Shown piece by piece: positions 20,297 to 52,547 of a stretch of DNA of 64,000 nt; the stretch's first letter is position 1, and each line of letters starts with the position of its first letter. A program made the position numbers and the translations under genes. The notes below the pieces were generated by a model, which searched no databases, was not told where the DNA came from, and saw nothing but the letters and a program-made list of their open reading frames with translations. The stretch is taken from positions 62,001-126,000 of the forward strand of contig JALMLS010000536.1 of NCBI GenBank assembly GCA_038496445.1, written 5' to 3'. The stretch comes from Trichosphaerium sp. ATCC 40318 (lineage: Eukaryota; Protista; Tubulinea).

Positions 20297-20916
20297 ATGT
20301 CTGAAACTGAGGGAGGAGAATCGAAGAAATATGGCTGGAAGGAAATTGGATTGTTTATCGGATGTGGCGTATTAATAGTACAGTTTGGAATTAATTATAA
20401 CATGAAAGCTTATTTTCCTAGCTTTTGGGTATTATAAACTTCATATTCGGTACAGGCATTCCTTTTGTCGGGTATATTGTTGGTATGTCTTCAAAAGCGT
20501 CCATATCACTAACAAACGCTGGAAAGGTGCATGTCAAGTTATTGTTGGCATCTTTGGAATTGTCGGAGTTTTTTTTAAGAGCAAAAAGCTCGTTTGGTTC
20601 GTATCCGCACTACTACGCATTTTTTAGCGTCAATTACGTGTTTTTGGCGTAAAGCAGCTTTTTTTTTGTTAGAATTCCTTAACGTGCTTCGTTAATGCTT
20701 GGTGTCGCGATTTTGTGTATACTCACTGTCATACAACTAATTATTTGGTTGTTTACTTCAAACAAGAAGGTGATCAACTTGGTTTTAACGCTCATCGCGT
20801 TTGTGTTCTACGTGCGTACAAACTAAGTGAAAATACGCCACAACAAACTAACTGTTCATCAGGGAGGCATGTTTCTACTTTCATGGCTATTCCGCGACCG
20901 CAAATTGTTTTACTAA
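20297..20916 (+). CDS. Small four-transmembrane protein of unknown function
   Basis: MSETEGGESKKYGWKEIGLFIGCGVLI..., four hydrophobic helices when the 20601 intron is spliced at a U12-type acceptor. Confidence 0.7.
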
Positions 20917-31333: not shown

Positions 31334-34162
31334 CTAAGCAGATAATTCCATACTTATGCGAACCAAATGATCATATGTCACAGCAATATGACCTAAAAGC
31401 GGCTTTAGCTAATAGCGAAAAAAAAAAAAAAAAAAAAAAAAGAAGCCTCACCGTCTTTGTGAGGATCACTCCAATCGAATAGTTCCTTCACGTGTACCAA
31501 ATGACAGCATAGTTTTAATAAATCATTCTTAGATCCTGCTGCGCCAATAGCAAAGTGAGCCAGCTGGGAAGAAACCGTAAGTCCAAATGCAGCAAGTTTA
31601 GAAAAAAAGAAGCTAATCCTTACACTGTTTTCTATTGTTTTGAGACTAACGTTAATGTTCGCATGAGCCAATGTAGTTTTGATTTCTTCAGCACTGAATG
31701 CACGTGGTTCAGAACCAACATAAAGTTTTGATTGAAGCGTATCAACAAGATGATGGAAGGCAGCATATTCTACGAGATAAAACATATGAGATTAAAAGAA
31801 AAATGACGCCGATAGATATTTTGGCGTAAAGTCACTGTTTATGCACCTTCGAAGCTAATTGTTCCATTTCTGTCTTCATCAAATACAGATATAATTTTAT
31901 TGGCCATCTCAACACCAAGAGGTTGATCCCCATCGAAAAATACTGCCTTGGAAAGTCTAAAAAAAAATAAATGTTCTAGATTCAAATACTCTGTTTTGAG
32001 TTTGCTGCTTACTCTGTAACTGATATTTCACCATTTTTGTTATCATCCATTGCATCAAAACTTCCTTTTAACCCAGACAACTCCAAACTTTTGACTTGTT
32101 GAAGCATAGTCTTATGCCAATCACGACCTAATTTTTCTCATTATTTTCTTATTTAAACTTTTGTCTTTTGATTTTGCTCCACAATTCAGGAACCACAATT
32201 ACCATCTATTTGGTTATATTGAACCTTTTTCCTCACAGCTTGACTTCTGGCTTTTTCAGGTGCACCTGGTTTTTCAACAGGTTTACCTTGAGACGCTAAA
32301 AGGGTGTCAAAATAAAATGTATAAATTTGTTTGGTATCAGCCGTGTTACCTGCTCTTCTTAGTTTACTTTTTAATCCCAATGACTTGAATCTATTAATGG
32401 CAACAGCGATCTTAACACCAGCTTTAAACTTCCTTCTTGCATTATATTTCCTAAATTGCTCTCGAGATACTTCAGGAATCTCTGTATCTTTTATAGTAGC
32501 ACTAGCCTACAAAGGAAAAAAACAAATAAGCAAAACTTATCTACACCAATATTCAATTCGTACTATCCATGGATGAGCCAAAGCTTGATCAACAGTGAAA
32601 CGTTCATTAGGATTCTTTCTTACCATCTTCCATACTAAAGCCGATAAGAATCAATCCAACAACTAAAGAAAAAAAAATGTACCCAAATCTTTTGCATCAT
32701 TCGATATGCCATACCTTCCATTACATAAGGAACATTCATGTTATAATGTTTATCTCTATAGATAGTAATTTCACGTACCACGCATCACCAAGCCAATTCC
32801 ACGTGCCAACCTCGATATTTCTCATCATTTGTTCTTGGTCAGGTATTTGGAATGGATGTATACCGCTCAGTAAAATGTACACGATCAAACCTAATGCTCT
32901 TTGTTAACATTGCAGGTTTCTCTATAACACTCACCAATTGCCCATACATCTACACCGATACCATATCCTTGAACTGGAGACATTTGCTGCCAACGGCGTG
33001 CAACTAAAAACCTGTTATCCAATTGAGCTTTAATTATCGGTTTTACCAATTTCTGGAGCCATCTAGGTGATTGTAAGACATAAATATAAGGATATAAATT
33101 TACGTACATATGGAATTGTACCAAGCATAGTCCTGAATGCAAATGGGTTAGATCCACCACGAGCGGCAAACCCGAAATCTGAGTTTGACATTAGATATTT
33201 AAAAACCAAACATCACAAAGCTCTGTCTTGAACTTAAACCTTGCAGTACCTGCAATTTTTACAATAGCGTCATCACCACCTGAAGACAATAACAGATATG
33301 GGAAATGTTAAGCCAAATAACAGCAATAAAATCAACGTTTGTTAGGTGTAAAAATAAAATAGAATAAAGATACTCTCCGGTTTTATATCACGATGCGCAA
33401 TACCTACCACAGTCTCTTTAACAAACAAAGTAACAGTATGAAAACAATAACAGTCGTACCCTGATCGTGCATGTGTTTTAATCCAAGAAGGACTTGTTTA
33501 GTTACAGAGCTAGCATAAGCTTCACCAAATCTCTTCAGCTTGGCAATACGATCAAACAACTCTCCACCTGTACACACGTGAGAAAAAAAAAACAAATAAA
33601 TAGTAAAGGGTCTGTGAATAAATTATCGGGTCATAGCTTACCCGTTACGTATTCTAAGGTGACGTAATACTGGAAGTCGCCTTGTGGAGCGAAAACTTCA
33701 CCCAAGTTTACAATCTAGTTCAAAGGCGTTAGATAGCGTTTATACAACGTGCAAATGTGAATTTGATCCGTTTTCGTACGTTTTGGTGTTGTAGATCAGC
33801 CATAACCTTCAACTCGCTTAGCATCTGGTCTGGTGGCGTTTTACGTTTATCCAGGATCTTCACAGCGCACGCCTGAACATTAAAAGGGTTTGTAAACTAA
33901 AAGTGTTAAGAACAACTCTCATACTTTGCCTGTTTGCTTATGAATAGCCTTACTACGCGAAATTTAGTGTTTGCTATAAACAACACACGTACTGAACAAC
34001 AGAAAACGCTCCAGATCCTAATTTCTCCTTAAAATCGTATATAGATTGGATTGGGGCATCATTTTGTCTTGGGAACCGCCATGACATTGCTGGTATTTGT
34101 GGTTGTGCCTGCTGAGTAGATGACCATTGTTGAGCAGGAGGAGCGTTACTAGGGAACTCCAT
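31334..34162 (-). CDS. CaMK-group Ser/Thr kinase fused to a C-terminal penta-EF-hand-like domain
   Basis: LGSGAFSVV, AVK, GGELFDRI, HRDIKPENLLL, DFG, APE, DVWAIG; EF hands DDNKNGEISVTE, DEDRNGTISFEE, DPHKDGHIAVTYD. Confidence 0.85.
33298..33373 (-). other. U12-type intron with GT-AT termini in the kinase catalytic loop
   Basis: Donor GTATCTTT; branch GGCTTAAC followed by ATTTCCCAT; only this junction restores HRDIKPE-N-LLL. Confidence 0.85.
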
Positions 34163-37584: not shown

Positions 37585-40154
37585 ATGCTGCGTGCAAGAT
37601 TCTTAGTGGGTTTCAAACAACGCCGACGCATCCGCAATGTGGAACCTACGCGCTGTTGTGTTCGTGTAAGAATTTAAACACCTTAATTATGCTTATAAGA
37701 CCTAGTACACTAAAATTCGTATACCACGACGCGTCGACGACATAAGCAGGTACTTTAACGCACAGACACGCATTCTACATTGTTTTATCATTTATAAATT
37801 AAATATCTTCGCTGACGCTTTTCTGAAGGCAAAACGTTAAACAAAGTATGATCAAAGAGGATTACATTGAACGAAAGGCCAACTTTTCTTCTGTCCATAA
37901 TTTTCTGTGGCTCTCTACGCGGCTCACTGACTCCAAGTATGTTTGGGAAGAGGGTATGGCGATATTAAAAGACGGGTCTGTAGATAGAAAACATTTGGAG
38001 TTTTATACAGAACTTCTATTACACGCGCCTAGAGGAGACAGAAGTGCTTTGCTTAATGATATGCGAGCGAAGGGTATCTCACCGGACCTGTACTGCTATA
38101 CAGCTCTTATAAAAGTACACACAGACGATAGAAATTCGGTAAAAGCATACGATGTTTTTAAGCAGTTAAGAAAAGACGGATTTTATCCTGACAGGAAGAC
38201 TCTTTCAAGTATTTTGCATTTAGAGCTTAAGCTAGGGAACTTTGAAAGAGCTGCAAAGATATTCAAGCATATAAGGGATTCAGGCGATATAGATTCTTAT
38301 GTTTACAGTCTTATGATGAAGTATTATATGTACGAAGAAGGAGATTTACAAAAAGTTGAAGAGCTTTTCGATGAGCTTAAGCAAAGGAAGATTAAGCCTT
38401 CTTTATTCTCGAGAAACACTATGCTACGTGCTTATCTACACCTCGATTCTGTAGAACGCGGACAGGAGTTCTTTAATATGCTAGTAGCTACAGGCGAATC
38501 TGTTGATGTTATGTCGTATACTTTTTTATTTGAAGCGTATCTTGACAAAGACGACGTTTCTGGTGCTCAGAGGGTTCTATCTGATATGAAAAAATCAGGT
38601 GTTGATCCAGGTGGATCTATGTATTTAATAATGATTTCTTATCATCTTAAACAAGGTGATTTTAAGGCAGCGAGAACTGTTTTCAGTGAACTTAAAACAC
38701 TTGATATAAGTATCGATATTGATCATATTAGCAAGCTTTTTTTAAGGTATTGTATGAAGAATAAGGATCCTTATGGTGCTTTAAAGTTTATAGAGGAGCT
38801 TAAGAAGATGGAAAAAGACGTTGAAGCGTACCATTATTGTTTTCTTATTAGGATTTATGTCGAACTTGAAGATTTTTCTAGTGCGAAAGAGGTTTACGCT
38901 AAGATCTTGAGAGAAAAGATGTATATGGCTACAAACGAGTACAACTATATTATAGATATGTATATTGCATGTGGGGAACCAAAGAAGGCTATAGCTACGC
39001 TTGACAAGATGAGAAGCAATAGTGTTCCTCGAAACGAAAGAACATTTTGCGTTTTTCTTCGTTACTATTTTAAGAAGCATAGAATGGATGAAGTAGAGGA
39101 AGTACTCAGGATTATGGAAGATGAACATGTTGCTATAACAATGATTACATATAACGTACTTATCGAGGGTTACCTTAGTACTGATGCGTTCTCTAATTCA
39201 AAACGTGTTTTTGAAAAACTCAAAAAAGACGGAAGAGAAGCTGATGTTCACACTTACAATATTATTCTTAAATACTTTGCTACTGCTAAACAAGGCGGTT
39301 GTAGAGAAGATATTAAGTATACACTCAACCACATGAAGGAAAACGGGGTGAAAGCAAACGAGTTGACATACAATGCTGTTATTAATACTGATTGTCGAAA
39401 CGACAGCCATTTGGATGGTTTTAAGCCTTCCACTGAAACTTATATTTCTAGAATTCAGAAATGTATTACAAGAGGATCTTTTGGTGAAGCTTTGACGCTA
39501 AGAAAGAAGATGGAAGCTGATGGTGTTGTTGTTACAACGCCAATACATAACTTTATGTTAACTGTTCATATGAAACGAGGTAATCTACCAGCTGCTTTTT
39601 CTGAGCTTAAAAAGATGGAAGAACAAGGTAAACATCCTAACCTTAACACATACAAGATCCTTCTTCAGAAGTTCATTGATAACGGCACTGATTATAAAAA
39701 AGAAGGAGAAAAAGACGAGAAAAAAGAAGAAGCGAATGCTGATGCTTATGTGCAAATAATGTCTTTTCTAGCATCAAGTTTTGATCTTGATAATGTTGAT
39801 GGTTTATTACGTTCTATACCAAAGCAAGGAGAAGAAGACGGTGGTAGTAATGAAGATCTTTCTTATACAATATTGATGCTATTGAGTAATAGAGCTCACT
39901 CTATTAGAGCTAGTAGACGTATAATGAGGCAGATGAAAAGTAAAAAAGCAAAGATGACCGCACAAACTTATATTTTACATGCTTTAACACTCGCTCATTA
40001 TGAGGATGATATGCTTAGTAATGAGATTTTAAGGACTATTGCTACTATGAAAAAAGAATTTGGTGTTACTGAAGAGTATAAGAAAGTGGTTAAGGCAGGT
40101 TTACTTGATGGTGTACAAAGTAGACCTTATTTGTTATCTTCTTTAACAAAATAA
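37585..40154 (+). CDS. P-class pentatricopeptide repeat protein, probably mitochondrial
   Basis: Many 35-aa repeats (PDLYCYTALI, DVMSYTFL, DVHTYNIIL, NELTYNAVI); Arg-rich N-terminal exon MLRARFLVGFKQRRR. Confidence 0.9.
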
Positions 40155-41840
40155 ATGTACAAAAGGAAATGACTAAATATTTAGAATGTCATCTTGTGGT
40201 TTTTTTTTTGTCGCTCGCTTCGAGTTGTGTTGGTTGAGTACAGTTAAAAATGGTCGCGATAGTGAGCGCCTAAGAAACTGAAAGCGTTCTGAGCATTATC
40301 TCTCTGAACGGCGAATTTGGTTGGAATACTGTTGCTGCTTACACAAAGCGAAGACAACGGAAGAGATGTTGCTTTCTTAGTTTATTCGCATGGCGGCTCA
40401 TCACACATAACTAAGGTATGCACCATTCGCGTTGTGTAGCGAATTGGCAGTAAAAGCGCTTTTAAGATTCTTACCGAACTTTTTTCAAAATTCTTACGAA
40501 AAATTGTTTGCCTGGTGGCGCAGTAGTGAGTCTAAACGAAAGAATTTTCTACTTTTTAATGCTGTGGATGGGCAGGGCAGGGTTCAAAGCTCGTAGGCTA
40601 TTTTACGTTTCTGTATCACCGATCAAGGTTGAATGCCTTGTCGGAGGTGTTAATACGCCTATGAATGGTAATAGCTTGCTTATTTGAGCGATTACTCACT
40701 CTGTTGGATTGTTTGCTTTTTCTTAGCCGTTGTTTTTTGCTTTTGGTTCTTCTAACCGTAATGAAGCGTATGAGGCATAATGTGCTCATTATAGCGTGTA
40801 ATCTTTGAAGTTTAGTTCAAACTGTTTAGATACTGTTGTATTATACTTCAGAGCCTTGTTTAAGCGTTTTTAGGCTAAATACGGTGTGGTGACACGTATA
40901 CCACTCTTTTTTTTTTCGTAAATCGTATTTTGCAATTGGGTTTTCTACCGATTTCTCACCTTGCTGGAGTATCCTCAGAACGTATTATTTTTTCGCCTTT
41001 TACTAAAAAATACCGTGAGTGATGCTCATCTGGCTCGTGTTCATATATTTTTGTGCCGCGATGCGGATAAACATCAACCCTTAAAACCAAAGAAAAACAA
41101 AAAAATTACAAGACAACACAATGTTGGTTTTGCATTGATTGACCTCAATGAGTTCCATATCAGCGCAAGTAGCGGAAACAAGATTTTGTGCGGATACACG
41201 TCACCCAAAAAAATTATCAAAAAAAAACTCACTACAAAACATGCGCCTAACCAAAAAAAAAATATACATTAGTTGCACTCAATCATTCAAATGCGTGTAT
41301 AAAGCTGTCCTTTATTATGCATCTATCAACTACGTGCTATTCTTTGATCATTCGTAGATATATACTTCGGTCGAGATGTGTACCATTTCTTTGAAATAGA
41401 AAACCCATGTGGCATTAAAACGTATTCCGCTGCCATGCTCAATGGTGTTTCCTACATGCATTTCATATGCTACATCATACCCGTTATAGGTCGGGTAGTT
41501 AAGTGAGCGGTATTGGACAGATTAAGAGCGTTTAAAAACAAACCACTTGACCTGACATATCACACAATGAGGATAGCGTTGAAGCTCACTGCAGGCATAG
41601 CGGCTTGTATTGGGATATCGTTCTTCTGTTTTTGGTACCTACCGGTCCAATTTAAACTTATGTACGCCGTGCTTTAATGTTAAAACAGTAGATAGAAACC
41701 AAACAAAAAAAAAAAAGAATGCAACTTGCATTTTTGTTGGTTTTTTTTGCGCACGTGATAACCTTTCATGAACTAATAAACTCTTAGATCTCCTGAGATT
41801 CGTCTAAACACTGTATTCGAAGGTGCTAATTGCCAGGTTA

Positions 41841-50574: not shown

Positions 50575-52547
50575 GTTGAATGGTAATTTTGTAGCAATTC
50601 GTGGTATTTTGTAGCAATTCTAAATAAACTAAAATGTCTCGCAACCCCTCCCAAACGCAAAAAATAATGAAGGTAGCCACTGCTAGTGTAGTTTTACAAC
50701 TGGCAAGGTTAAAAACTCCTCAACATGGGGCAATCCTCAAAATATGCCGTGAAGTAGCTCAGAAATATGATCTAAATGCCCATTCACTAAGGCAGAGTGT
50801 TAGAAGACGAAAACAAAAGGTGTATTCTCCGAATTACAAATCTCACGGGAACCAGTTATTTTCAGATAATCAAGAAAATGTCTTAGTTGGCTATTGTTTG
50901 AGCTTTAGCTCTTTGCACAAGCCTCTGCCACGTTCTTCTGTGATATCTATGGCATCAGCTCTTTATTTGAAAAAGAAGAAGTCTAGTTTGGAAGCTTGGT
51001 ATGACGGATTTGTGAAAAGGCACTCGGATATTCTCAAAGAGTCAATTTCAAAACCAATTCGGGCATGTAGGGTATCCAACAACCTGTTAGAAGATGTCAC
51101 AGGGTGGTGTGATATGTATGAGAAGTTTCAAGATCACAATGTGATGAATCCTGATCTGATGTTCAATGTTGATGAAAAATTATTTACTGAACGAAGTGAT
51201 GGCCTTAAATATGTTACCCTAGAAGATAGAATGAAAAAAATTGGAGGAACAGTCACCACCAAAACAAGCAAGCCACTGACGTTGATTCCGTTTATTTCAG
51301 CATCAGGGAAGGTTTTGGTGACGATTTACATTATGGCAGCTAAAAATAAAGGTGACACTCAAAACATCACCAATTTGGCCATACCAAAACCTTCCAAGAC
51401 TCGATCTTCATGGCCCAGATACTATGTATGTCATGAGAATGGATATGTGACCAACGAAATTTGGCCAAAAATTCTTGATGTATTTTTACATCACCTAAAA
51501 GAAATCCAAGGTGACCGAACTGCCTTTTTATTTTTGGATCGTTTGGCAAGCCACATCAACACTGAATCTCTTCAAAAGTGTCTTAAACAGAATGTACAAA
51601 CTGTTACCTGGGTGCCTCATACCTCACATTTTGCACAACCATTGGATGACAAGCCATTTGCAAACTTGGCTAGAGCTTATACAAAATTTCGAAAACAAAA
51701 GGCTCAAAGAGGAATGGAGACCAGACAAAAGGCTTGTTCTTATGATTTTATATCTCTAGAGGCAGCAGAGAGCGAAGCCTTCACCAAAAAAATCCTAACT
51801 TCCTCATGGAAAGCCGTTGGTGTGCTACCATATGACAGGAATTTGATTCTAAAAAATGTTTCTGAAAATATTGGGCAACCTTCAGATGAAACACTTTCTG
51901 ACCTTCCTGATGATGTTTTGAAAGCAAAAATCGCTATGGATGCTGTAATGACAGAGGAGGTGCCTAAAAAAGAAATGAAACTTGGATCAGTGAGGATGAT
52001 AAAGAATCACATGTACATTGGACAAGAACTTGTTCAATTTGCTGAAAGCCAGAAAAAAAAGAAGAACAGGAGCAAAATCAAAAGGCAAAGGAGAGGCGCA
52101 TTAAATTAGATGAGAGAGAGAAAAAAAATCAAGAAAAAGAAGCAAAAAGAGCTGAGAGAGAAGAGCAAAAAAAAATCCGAGAGAATCAAAAAAAAATTGA
52201 AGCTTCTCAAAAGAGGTTTGTCCGTGAAAAAACAACCTGCCGTGTATGTCACACCAAAGTATGCAGAGGAGGGCGTAATTGGATGTGGTGTGAGCAGTGT
52301 AATCAATTTGGTAGTTGCCCTGGATGTGTTCAAAAAAAATTTGGCAAAGAATTAATTGAAAATCACGGGTTAGATTGTCCAGGTGGAGAACCTTATGAGA
52401 TCTGGATCACAAAGCAGTAGTAAAGCACTTGTTAAAATATCAAGTAATAAAAAGTCTTTTGTTAGGAGTAAAAGTCATTTTATTGTACAAAAACAAGATT
52501 TTTTTTTGCTACAAAATACCTAGTTTGCTACAAAATAGCCACTTGAC
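50575..52547 (+). mobile_element. pogo/Fot-like (Tc1-mariner superfamily) DNA transposon
   Basis: Imperfect ~43-bp TIRs (50575-50617, 52506-52547), each with two ATTTTGTAGCAA repeats, flanked by TA; encodes a DD35D transposase. Confidence 0.9.
50634..52420 (+). CDS. DD35D transposase; C-terminal coiled coil and PHD-like zinc finger lie in the -1 frame
   Basis: HTH/CENP-B-like N-terminus, FNVDE, FLDRLASH, QPLD; after the A8 run (52053-52060) the -1 frame reads CRVCH...WMWCEQC...CPGC...H...C to a stop at 52420. Confidence 0.85.

Follow-up and report, generated by a model that had tools for sequence, protein, structure and literature searches.

The kinase gene and its surroundings

The window considered here, that is the whole 64-kb stretch of DNA that was analysed, has a GC content of about 36% and introns of 40-77 nt. 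It is eukaryotic, as these values and a U5 RNA gene show, and a human origin was rejected on the same values and on the 70-Mb protist assembly to which it belongs. On its minus strand lies a gene for a CaMK-like Ser/Thr kinase. The encoded protein is estimated at about 565 aa, with exons of at most 56 aa each. The per-exon translations contain GSGAFSVV, CAVKIL, HRDIKPE, (D)FG, MAPEI, and DVWAIG. Hence, the Gly-rich loop, the VAIK Lys, the HRDxKxxN loop, DFG, and APE of eukaryotic protein kinases are all found, the Asn of the loop and the Asp of DFG having split codons, the latter divided by intron 7. Downstream of these motifs come a CaMK-like regulatory segment and then the EF-hands. Exon-wise Pfam matches follow the order of the Pkinase profile (27-59 and 83-117) and of EF-hand families. 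With exons scored singly, their shortness keeps each Pkinase match below the whole-domain cut-off.

Of the 19 introns, 18 are GT-AG; the sole exception, intron 6, interrupts the catalytic loop. Exon 6 is a micro-exon sitting between a U2-type intron and a U12-like GT-AT intron. The features discussed below are the following.

31334-34162, minus strand: CaMK-like Ser/Thr kinase gene with C-terminal EF-hands, 20 exons and 19 introns
33404-33459, minus strand: U2-type GT-AG intron upstream of exon 6
33374-33403, minus strand: exon 6, 30 nt, encoding (G)IAHRDIKPE and the first base of the Asn codon
33298-33373, minus strand: intron 6, 76 nt, phase 1, GT...AT, without internal AG
33366-33373, minus strand: 5' splice site GTATCTTT, with T at +6 relative to the U12 consensus RTATCCTT
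33307-33314, minus strand: branch-site-like GGCTTAAC (consensus TCCTTAAC), candidate branch A at 33309 and 33308
33298-33299, minus strand: terminal AT, putative 3' splice site
33296-33297, minus strand: exonic AT in tandem with the terminal one, at 12 nt from the branch A
33280-33281, minus strand: first AG 3' of the donor, rival in-frame acceptor in exon 7, 28 nt from the branch A
33250-33297, minus strand: exon 7, with the last two bases of the Asn codon, then LLLSSGGDDAIVKIA, then the first base of the DFG Asp codon

Two other introns of the gene, intron 18 (31564-31623, 60 nt) and intron 14 (32296-32349, 54 nt), both on the minus strand, are stop-free with a length that is a multiple of 3, so that their retention would preserve the frame. 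Elsewhere, long open reading frames (ORFs) of the window encode ankyrin, LRR/F-box, and DDE transposase proteins, and three features were noted, one of them a DDE transposase ORF.

37848-40154, plus strand: intron-less ORF for a 768-aa PPR protein, divergent from the kinase gene
40960-41067, plus strand: U5 spliceosomal RNA gene (60.8 bits)
50634-52109, plus strand: 491-aa ORF, DDE_1 transposase domain; probable pogo/Tigger-like element

Searches for transcripts and relatives of the kinase gene, made exon by exon, gave little, and no transcript came to light. At the DNA level, a search for a second copy or allele matched the locus alone, and a pattern made from exon 7 had 0 matches in metagenome contigs. 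At the protein level, exon 14 compared with 1.84 billion protein representatives gave distant matches of at most 47% identity and no orthologue, exon 1 gave no candidate, and a 72-aa open frame around exon 5 gave no match. These single-exon searches covered targets of 0.55-1.75 times the query length, a range outside which a protein of about 565 aa lies. For the 768-aa PPR ORF, the protein collection contains neither an identical entry nor a close relative, the best match having 21% identity. Judging from this one gene, the proteins of this genome appear to be absent from the collection.

Borders and splice signals of intron 6

On the minus strand, the region reads CCG GAG A, then GTATCTTT ... 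GGCTTAACATTTCCCAT, then AT CTG TTA TTG. The intron begins with the G at 33373, its tail reads ...TTTCCCAT, and its last base is the T at 33298. Cuts at 33374/33373 and 33298/33297 define the only borders that restore the AAT (Asn) codon of HRDIKPEN. Shifting both borders by one base, in either direction, puts Tyr or Ser in place of Asn. An AT...AT alternative was also considered and rejected, its donor being neither U12-like nor U2-like. Reading through the intron gives IAHRDIKPESIFILFYFYT and then a TAA stop, after 10 extra codons. A preliminary description of this DNA had placed the intron at the same coordinates with a terminal AT, had held that these borders alone yield HRDIKPENLLL and had reported a stop on read-through; each of these statements is borne out. 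The lack of an internal AG is not unusual in the gene, since 3 of its 18 other introns are likewise AG-free.

The same description stated that the next AG would delete the catalytic Asn and strand beta-7. Indeed, the AG at 33281-33280 lies 18 nt into exon 7, in frame, and its use removes N-L-L-L-S-S. If intron 6 ended there, the gene would make a kinase isoform without activity, or would only just have lost its proper acceptor. This AG is the first one past the donor, a pyrimidine-rich run ending in CAG/G leads up to it, and it keeps the frame. However, the 18 nt that follow the terminal AT encode LLLSS and align with PENLLLAS, PENLLLGS, and NLLLSS of paralogous kinases. The exon 7 segment LLLSSGGDDAIVKIA is 73% and 60% identical, without gaps, to the paralogs L009 and L006, and L012 reads NLLLSSKEADAAIKIADFG. 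Since the 18 nt match three paralogs in both length and sequence, they are exon rather than intron. In addition, all 20 exons and every other kinase motif are intact, the donor is poor for U1, and the distance of this AG from the branch motif exceeds the 7-17 nt found in the consensus U12 candidates of the genome. An intron ending at 33280 is thus a slim prospect.

The donor GTATCTTT is an extended U12-like 5' splice site that agrees with RTATCCTT at 7 of 8 positions, and not one of the 18 GT-AG introns of the gene starts with GTATC. By hand count, T at +6 occurs in about 5-6 of the genome's GT-subtype U12 candidates with a strong branch site, against about 15 with C at +6. At a quarter to a third, it appears to be a real minority variant in this genome. 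As for the branch region, GGCTTAAC keeps the CTTAAC core but has lost two upstream pairs to U12 snRNA. A G before CTTAAC is found in 9 of the 100 matches listed, close to background, and in about 5% of real sites by hand count. Both U12 signals of intron 6 are therefore sub-consensus. Moreover, motifs resembling TTAAC or CTAAC also occur near the 3' ends of the U2-type introns of the gene, so that the branch motif does not discriminate between the two classes.

Counted from the branch A at 33308, the last base of the intron lies 10 nt away, or 11 nt if counted from that at 33309, which is the short branch-to-3' distance of U12 introns. The tandem AT 2 nt further downstream, after which a cut shifts the frame, could compete with the terminal AT and is a possible source of splicing errors; this was counted against the preferred reading of a minor-spliceosome intron. 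U12 introns usually have no distinct polypyrimidine tract. Pyrimidines make up 70% of the 20 nt preceding the terminal dinucleotide, so that intron 6 does not clearly lack such a tract, and this was also counted against a U12 assignment. In this AT-rich genome, the U2-type introns of the gene range from 20% to 85% pyrimidine over the same interval and pyrimidine content is thus not discriminating here.

The same GT-AT borders could also be used by the major (U2-type) spliceosome, intron 6 then being a rare non-AG U2 intron. Its CTTAAC fits the yTnAy pattern of the other introns of the gene as well, its 3' region is pyrimidine-rich, and a U2-type GT-AT intron is conserved in human and mouse DGCR2 (PMC1557818). 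Against this, the donor GTATCT carries T and C at +4 and +5, whereas 12 of the 18 U2-type donors of the gene have G at +5, and non-AG ends are far rarer in U2 than in U12 introns (PMC1557818; PMC3584512).

Minor-spliceosome components and related introns in the genome

The minor-spliceosome RNAs were searched for in the 70-Mb assembly (642 contigs). U11 (66.4 bits) and U6atac (51.9 bits) score above the Rfam cut-offs. U12 is full-length and scores 39.2 bits (cut-off 53) with an intact branch-pairing box, GAGUAAGGAAAAUAA. The pairing boxes of U11 (AAAAGGG) and U12 match the consensus. No U4atac was found in the genome search. Genes for U11, U12, and U6atac indicate that a minor spliceosome is present in this organism.

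The only U6atac locus found (L002:1501-1621; G000:C20:307774-307894) departs from what is expected, with AGCCGAGAGAUGG in place of the Rfam consensus AAAGGAGAGAAGG. Its box reads AGCCGAGAGA instead of AAAGGAGAGA and is devoid of the AAGGA that pairs with the 5' splice site. U12 5' splice sites presumably pair through their UCCUU with the box that is altered here, and the alteration was counted against the U12 assignment.

Motif pairs with the consensus U12 donor are enriched in the genome, which clearly contains consensus U12 introns. RTATCCTT followed by TCCTTAAC within 25-55 nt was found 30 times against 2 in a reversed control, and RTATCCTT...CTTAAC 120 times against 32. In contrast, the relaxed pair GTATCTTT...CTTAAC, that of intron 6, is not enriched (49 against 39 in the control). 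This pair was rejected as evidence on its own, being close to chance, and the lack of enrichment is a further point in favour of removal by the major spliceosome. What is above chance is the position of the motifs, exactly on the borders that the frame requires and at the right spacing. As a rough guess, U12 introns in this genome would number hundreds rather than tens of thousands.

For 28 of the matches to the strict pair with TCCTTAAC, the distance from the branch to the 3' end was counted from the second A of TTAAC, up to the nearest AG in the GT subtype and the nearest AC in the AT subtype. It is mostly 7-13 nt, with a range of 7-17 nt. Two loci, L018 (G000:C1:569196-569305) and L025 (G000:C20:243040-243134), have a perfect GTATCCTT and TCCTTAAC and lack an AG for about 20 nt from the branch motif. 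Both are GT-subtype candidates for additional U12 introns with a non-AG end. A comparable candidate lies in the window itself.

20601-20697, plus strand: second U12-like candidate without AG acceptor; GTATCCGC, then perfect TTCCTTAAC, no AG for more than 60 nt

Together with the altered U6atac, these three non-AG candidates may reflect relaxed or remodelled minor splicing.

A search with exon 5 as query retrieved 12 related kinase loci from the genome. One of them, L009, carries a clear U12 intron in the catalytic loop, GTATCCAAC...CCCTTAAC followed by 10 nt ending in AG (about 1629-1721). Three others, L006 (1629-1698), L007, and L008, are near-identical copies of one paralog and have the intron GTATCCAA...GCCTTAAC followed by TCCTCTAT. 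There, the frame, AA/A CCT GAA AAT, requires an AT end, and the branch A is at -10. The three copies differ by indels in the poly-T region and are identical from the branch to the end of the intron. In all four loci the intron lies inside the Lys codon of HRDIK, in phase 2, 8 nt upstream of the intron 6 position, and its signals (GTATCCAA...CCTTAAC) are stronger than those of intron 6. Comparison of L009, ending in AG, with L006-L008, ending in AT, shows that within the gene family the 3' end of a U12 intron has switched between AG and AT. Introns of the U2 type are also found in the loop: between K and P in L010 and L011, and directly after the Asn, 2 nt downstream of the intron 6 position, in L012. 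No catalytic-loop intron is present in L013, L015, and L017. Across the kinase family, catalytic-loop introns thus occupy four positions within 9 nt, and these neighbouring sites may stem either from sliding or from independent gains.

These paralogs bear on two of the alternatives. Firstly, the AT end of intron 6 might be an assembly or base-calling error, the true end being the AG of an ordinary GT-AG U12 intron, and a single T-for-G change at 33298 would suffice. Yet a GT-AT intron in a second gene, assembled three times, argues against such an error, the U12 candidates L018, L025, and 20601-20697 likewise have no nearby AG, and GT-AT is an expected minority class. An error at this base is highly improbable. 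Secondly, the occurrence of unambiguous U12 introns, GT-AT ones included, in the catalytic loop of paralogs also speaks against removal of intron 6 by the major spliceosome, which is improbable.

A broader proposal is that the minor-splicing system of this amoeba-like protist has been remodelled, with U12 introns that were gained or slid recently within its lineage and 3' sites defined almost purely by distance. It derives from the altered U6atac box, 5' splice sites varying at +6 to +8, non-AG ends, and shifted positions in the loop. We regard it as tentative and rather unlikely. If true, Physarum would be joined by a second case, perhaps from a lineage for which minor splicing has not been described.

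A probable minor-spliceosome GT-AT intron and its known counterparts

Non-AG ends are very rare for the major spliceosome, but the minor one accepts them. A U12-like donor at the required border, the branch spacing and the non-AG end, taken in combination, argue for the U12 assignment. Given correct borders, rough odds of more than 10 to 1 favour U12 over U2, these odds using literature-level frequencies rather than those of this genome. We infer that the RNA is cut at these borders, and by the minor rather than the major spliceosome. The most probable reading, to which we give a probability of about 0.78 from the sequence, makes intron 6 a U12-type GT-AT intron in which distance from the branch point determines the 3' site. 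The preliminary description had proposed the same, and the spliceosomal RNA genes, the distances of 10 and 28 nt and the U12 introns of the paralogs agree with it.

According to this model, U11 and then U6atac would recognise GTATCTTT, and U12 would pair with CTTAAC, bulging a branch adenosine. The second step would join the exons about 10 nt past the branch, where the dinucleotide is AT. The 3' site would be picked mainly by distance, the minor spliceosome tolerating non-AG ends. The product would have an intact HRDIKPEN catalytic loop followed by strand beta-7 (LLL).

Introns of this subtype are known. Four U12-type GT-AT introns were described in human and three in mouse, two of them conserved, and experiments cited in the same study show that the U12 machinery splices GT-AT introns (Sheth et al. 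2006, PMC1557818). GT-AT is also among the conserved non-canonical minor termini in a pan-eukaryotic survey (10.1101/2022.09.24.509304). GT-AT accounts for 17% of the 1,425 non-canonical introns of Physarum, of which 71% were classed as U12-type (10.1101/2020.10.12.336362). Finally, the optimal branch-to-3' splice site distance of U12 introns is 11-13 nt, and this distance is a determinant of 3' site choice (PMC3584512).

Like the human and mouse GT-AT U12 introns (DEADC1, SLC24A6; PMC1557818), intron 6 has a U12-like 5' splice site, a branch motif near the 3' end and an AT end. It differs from them by its T at +6, its GGCTTAAC, its length of 76 nt, its occurrence in a protist and the splitting of a kinase catalytic-loop codon. 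The resemblance to Physarum polycephalum is also clear: the 5' splice site consensus of its U12 introns, [G/A]TATC[C/T]TTT, includes GTATCTTT, their branch A is 10-12 nt from the 3' end, and they are likewise supported by conservation across paralogs (10.1101/2020.10.12.336362). However, the branch motif of Physarum is TTTGA with matching changes in U12, whereas the present genome has the canonical CCTTAAC and U12 box. The U12 introns of the paralogs (GT-AG in L009, GT-AT in L006-L008) share with intron 6 the gene family, the loop and the intron type, and those of L006-L008 also the AT end and the branch A at -10. Nevertheless, with their upstream position, different phase and stronger motifs, they are not positionally homologous to it. 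U2-type GT-AT introns such as that of DGCR2 have the same terminal dinucleotides but possess an optimal U2-type 5' splice site and a polypyrimidine tract, unlike intron 6 with its U12-like donor (PMC1557818).

The subtype of intron 6 is therefore already catalogued in human, mouse, and Physarum, and choice of the 3' site by distance over AG is expected behaviour of the minor spliceosome. In this respect, the novelty implied by the preliminary description was overstated, GT-AT being a catalogued and competent U12 subtype (PMC1557818; 10.1101/2020.10.12.336362) and the distance rule being textbook knowledge (PMC3584512). For annotation, gene finders restricted to GT-AG and AT-AC introns would break the kinase or drop its catalytic Asn, and a non-canonical junction is needed. 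For biology, intron 6 would provide one more case, in a little-studied protist, of an essential catalytic residue that relies on a non-AG 3' site chosen by distance by the minor spliceosome.
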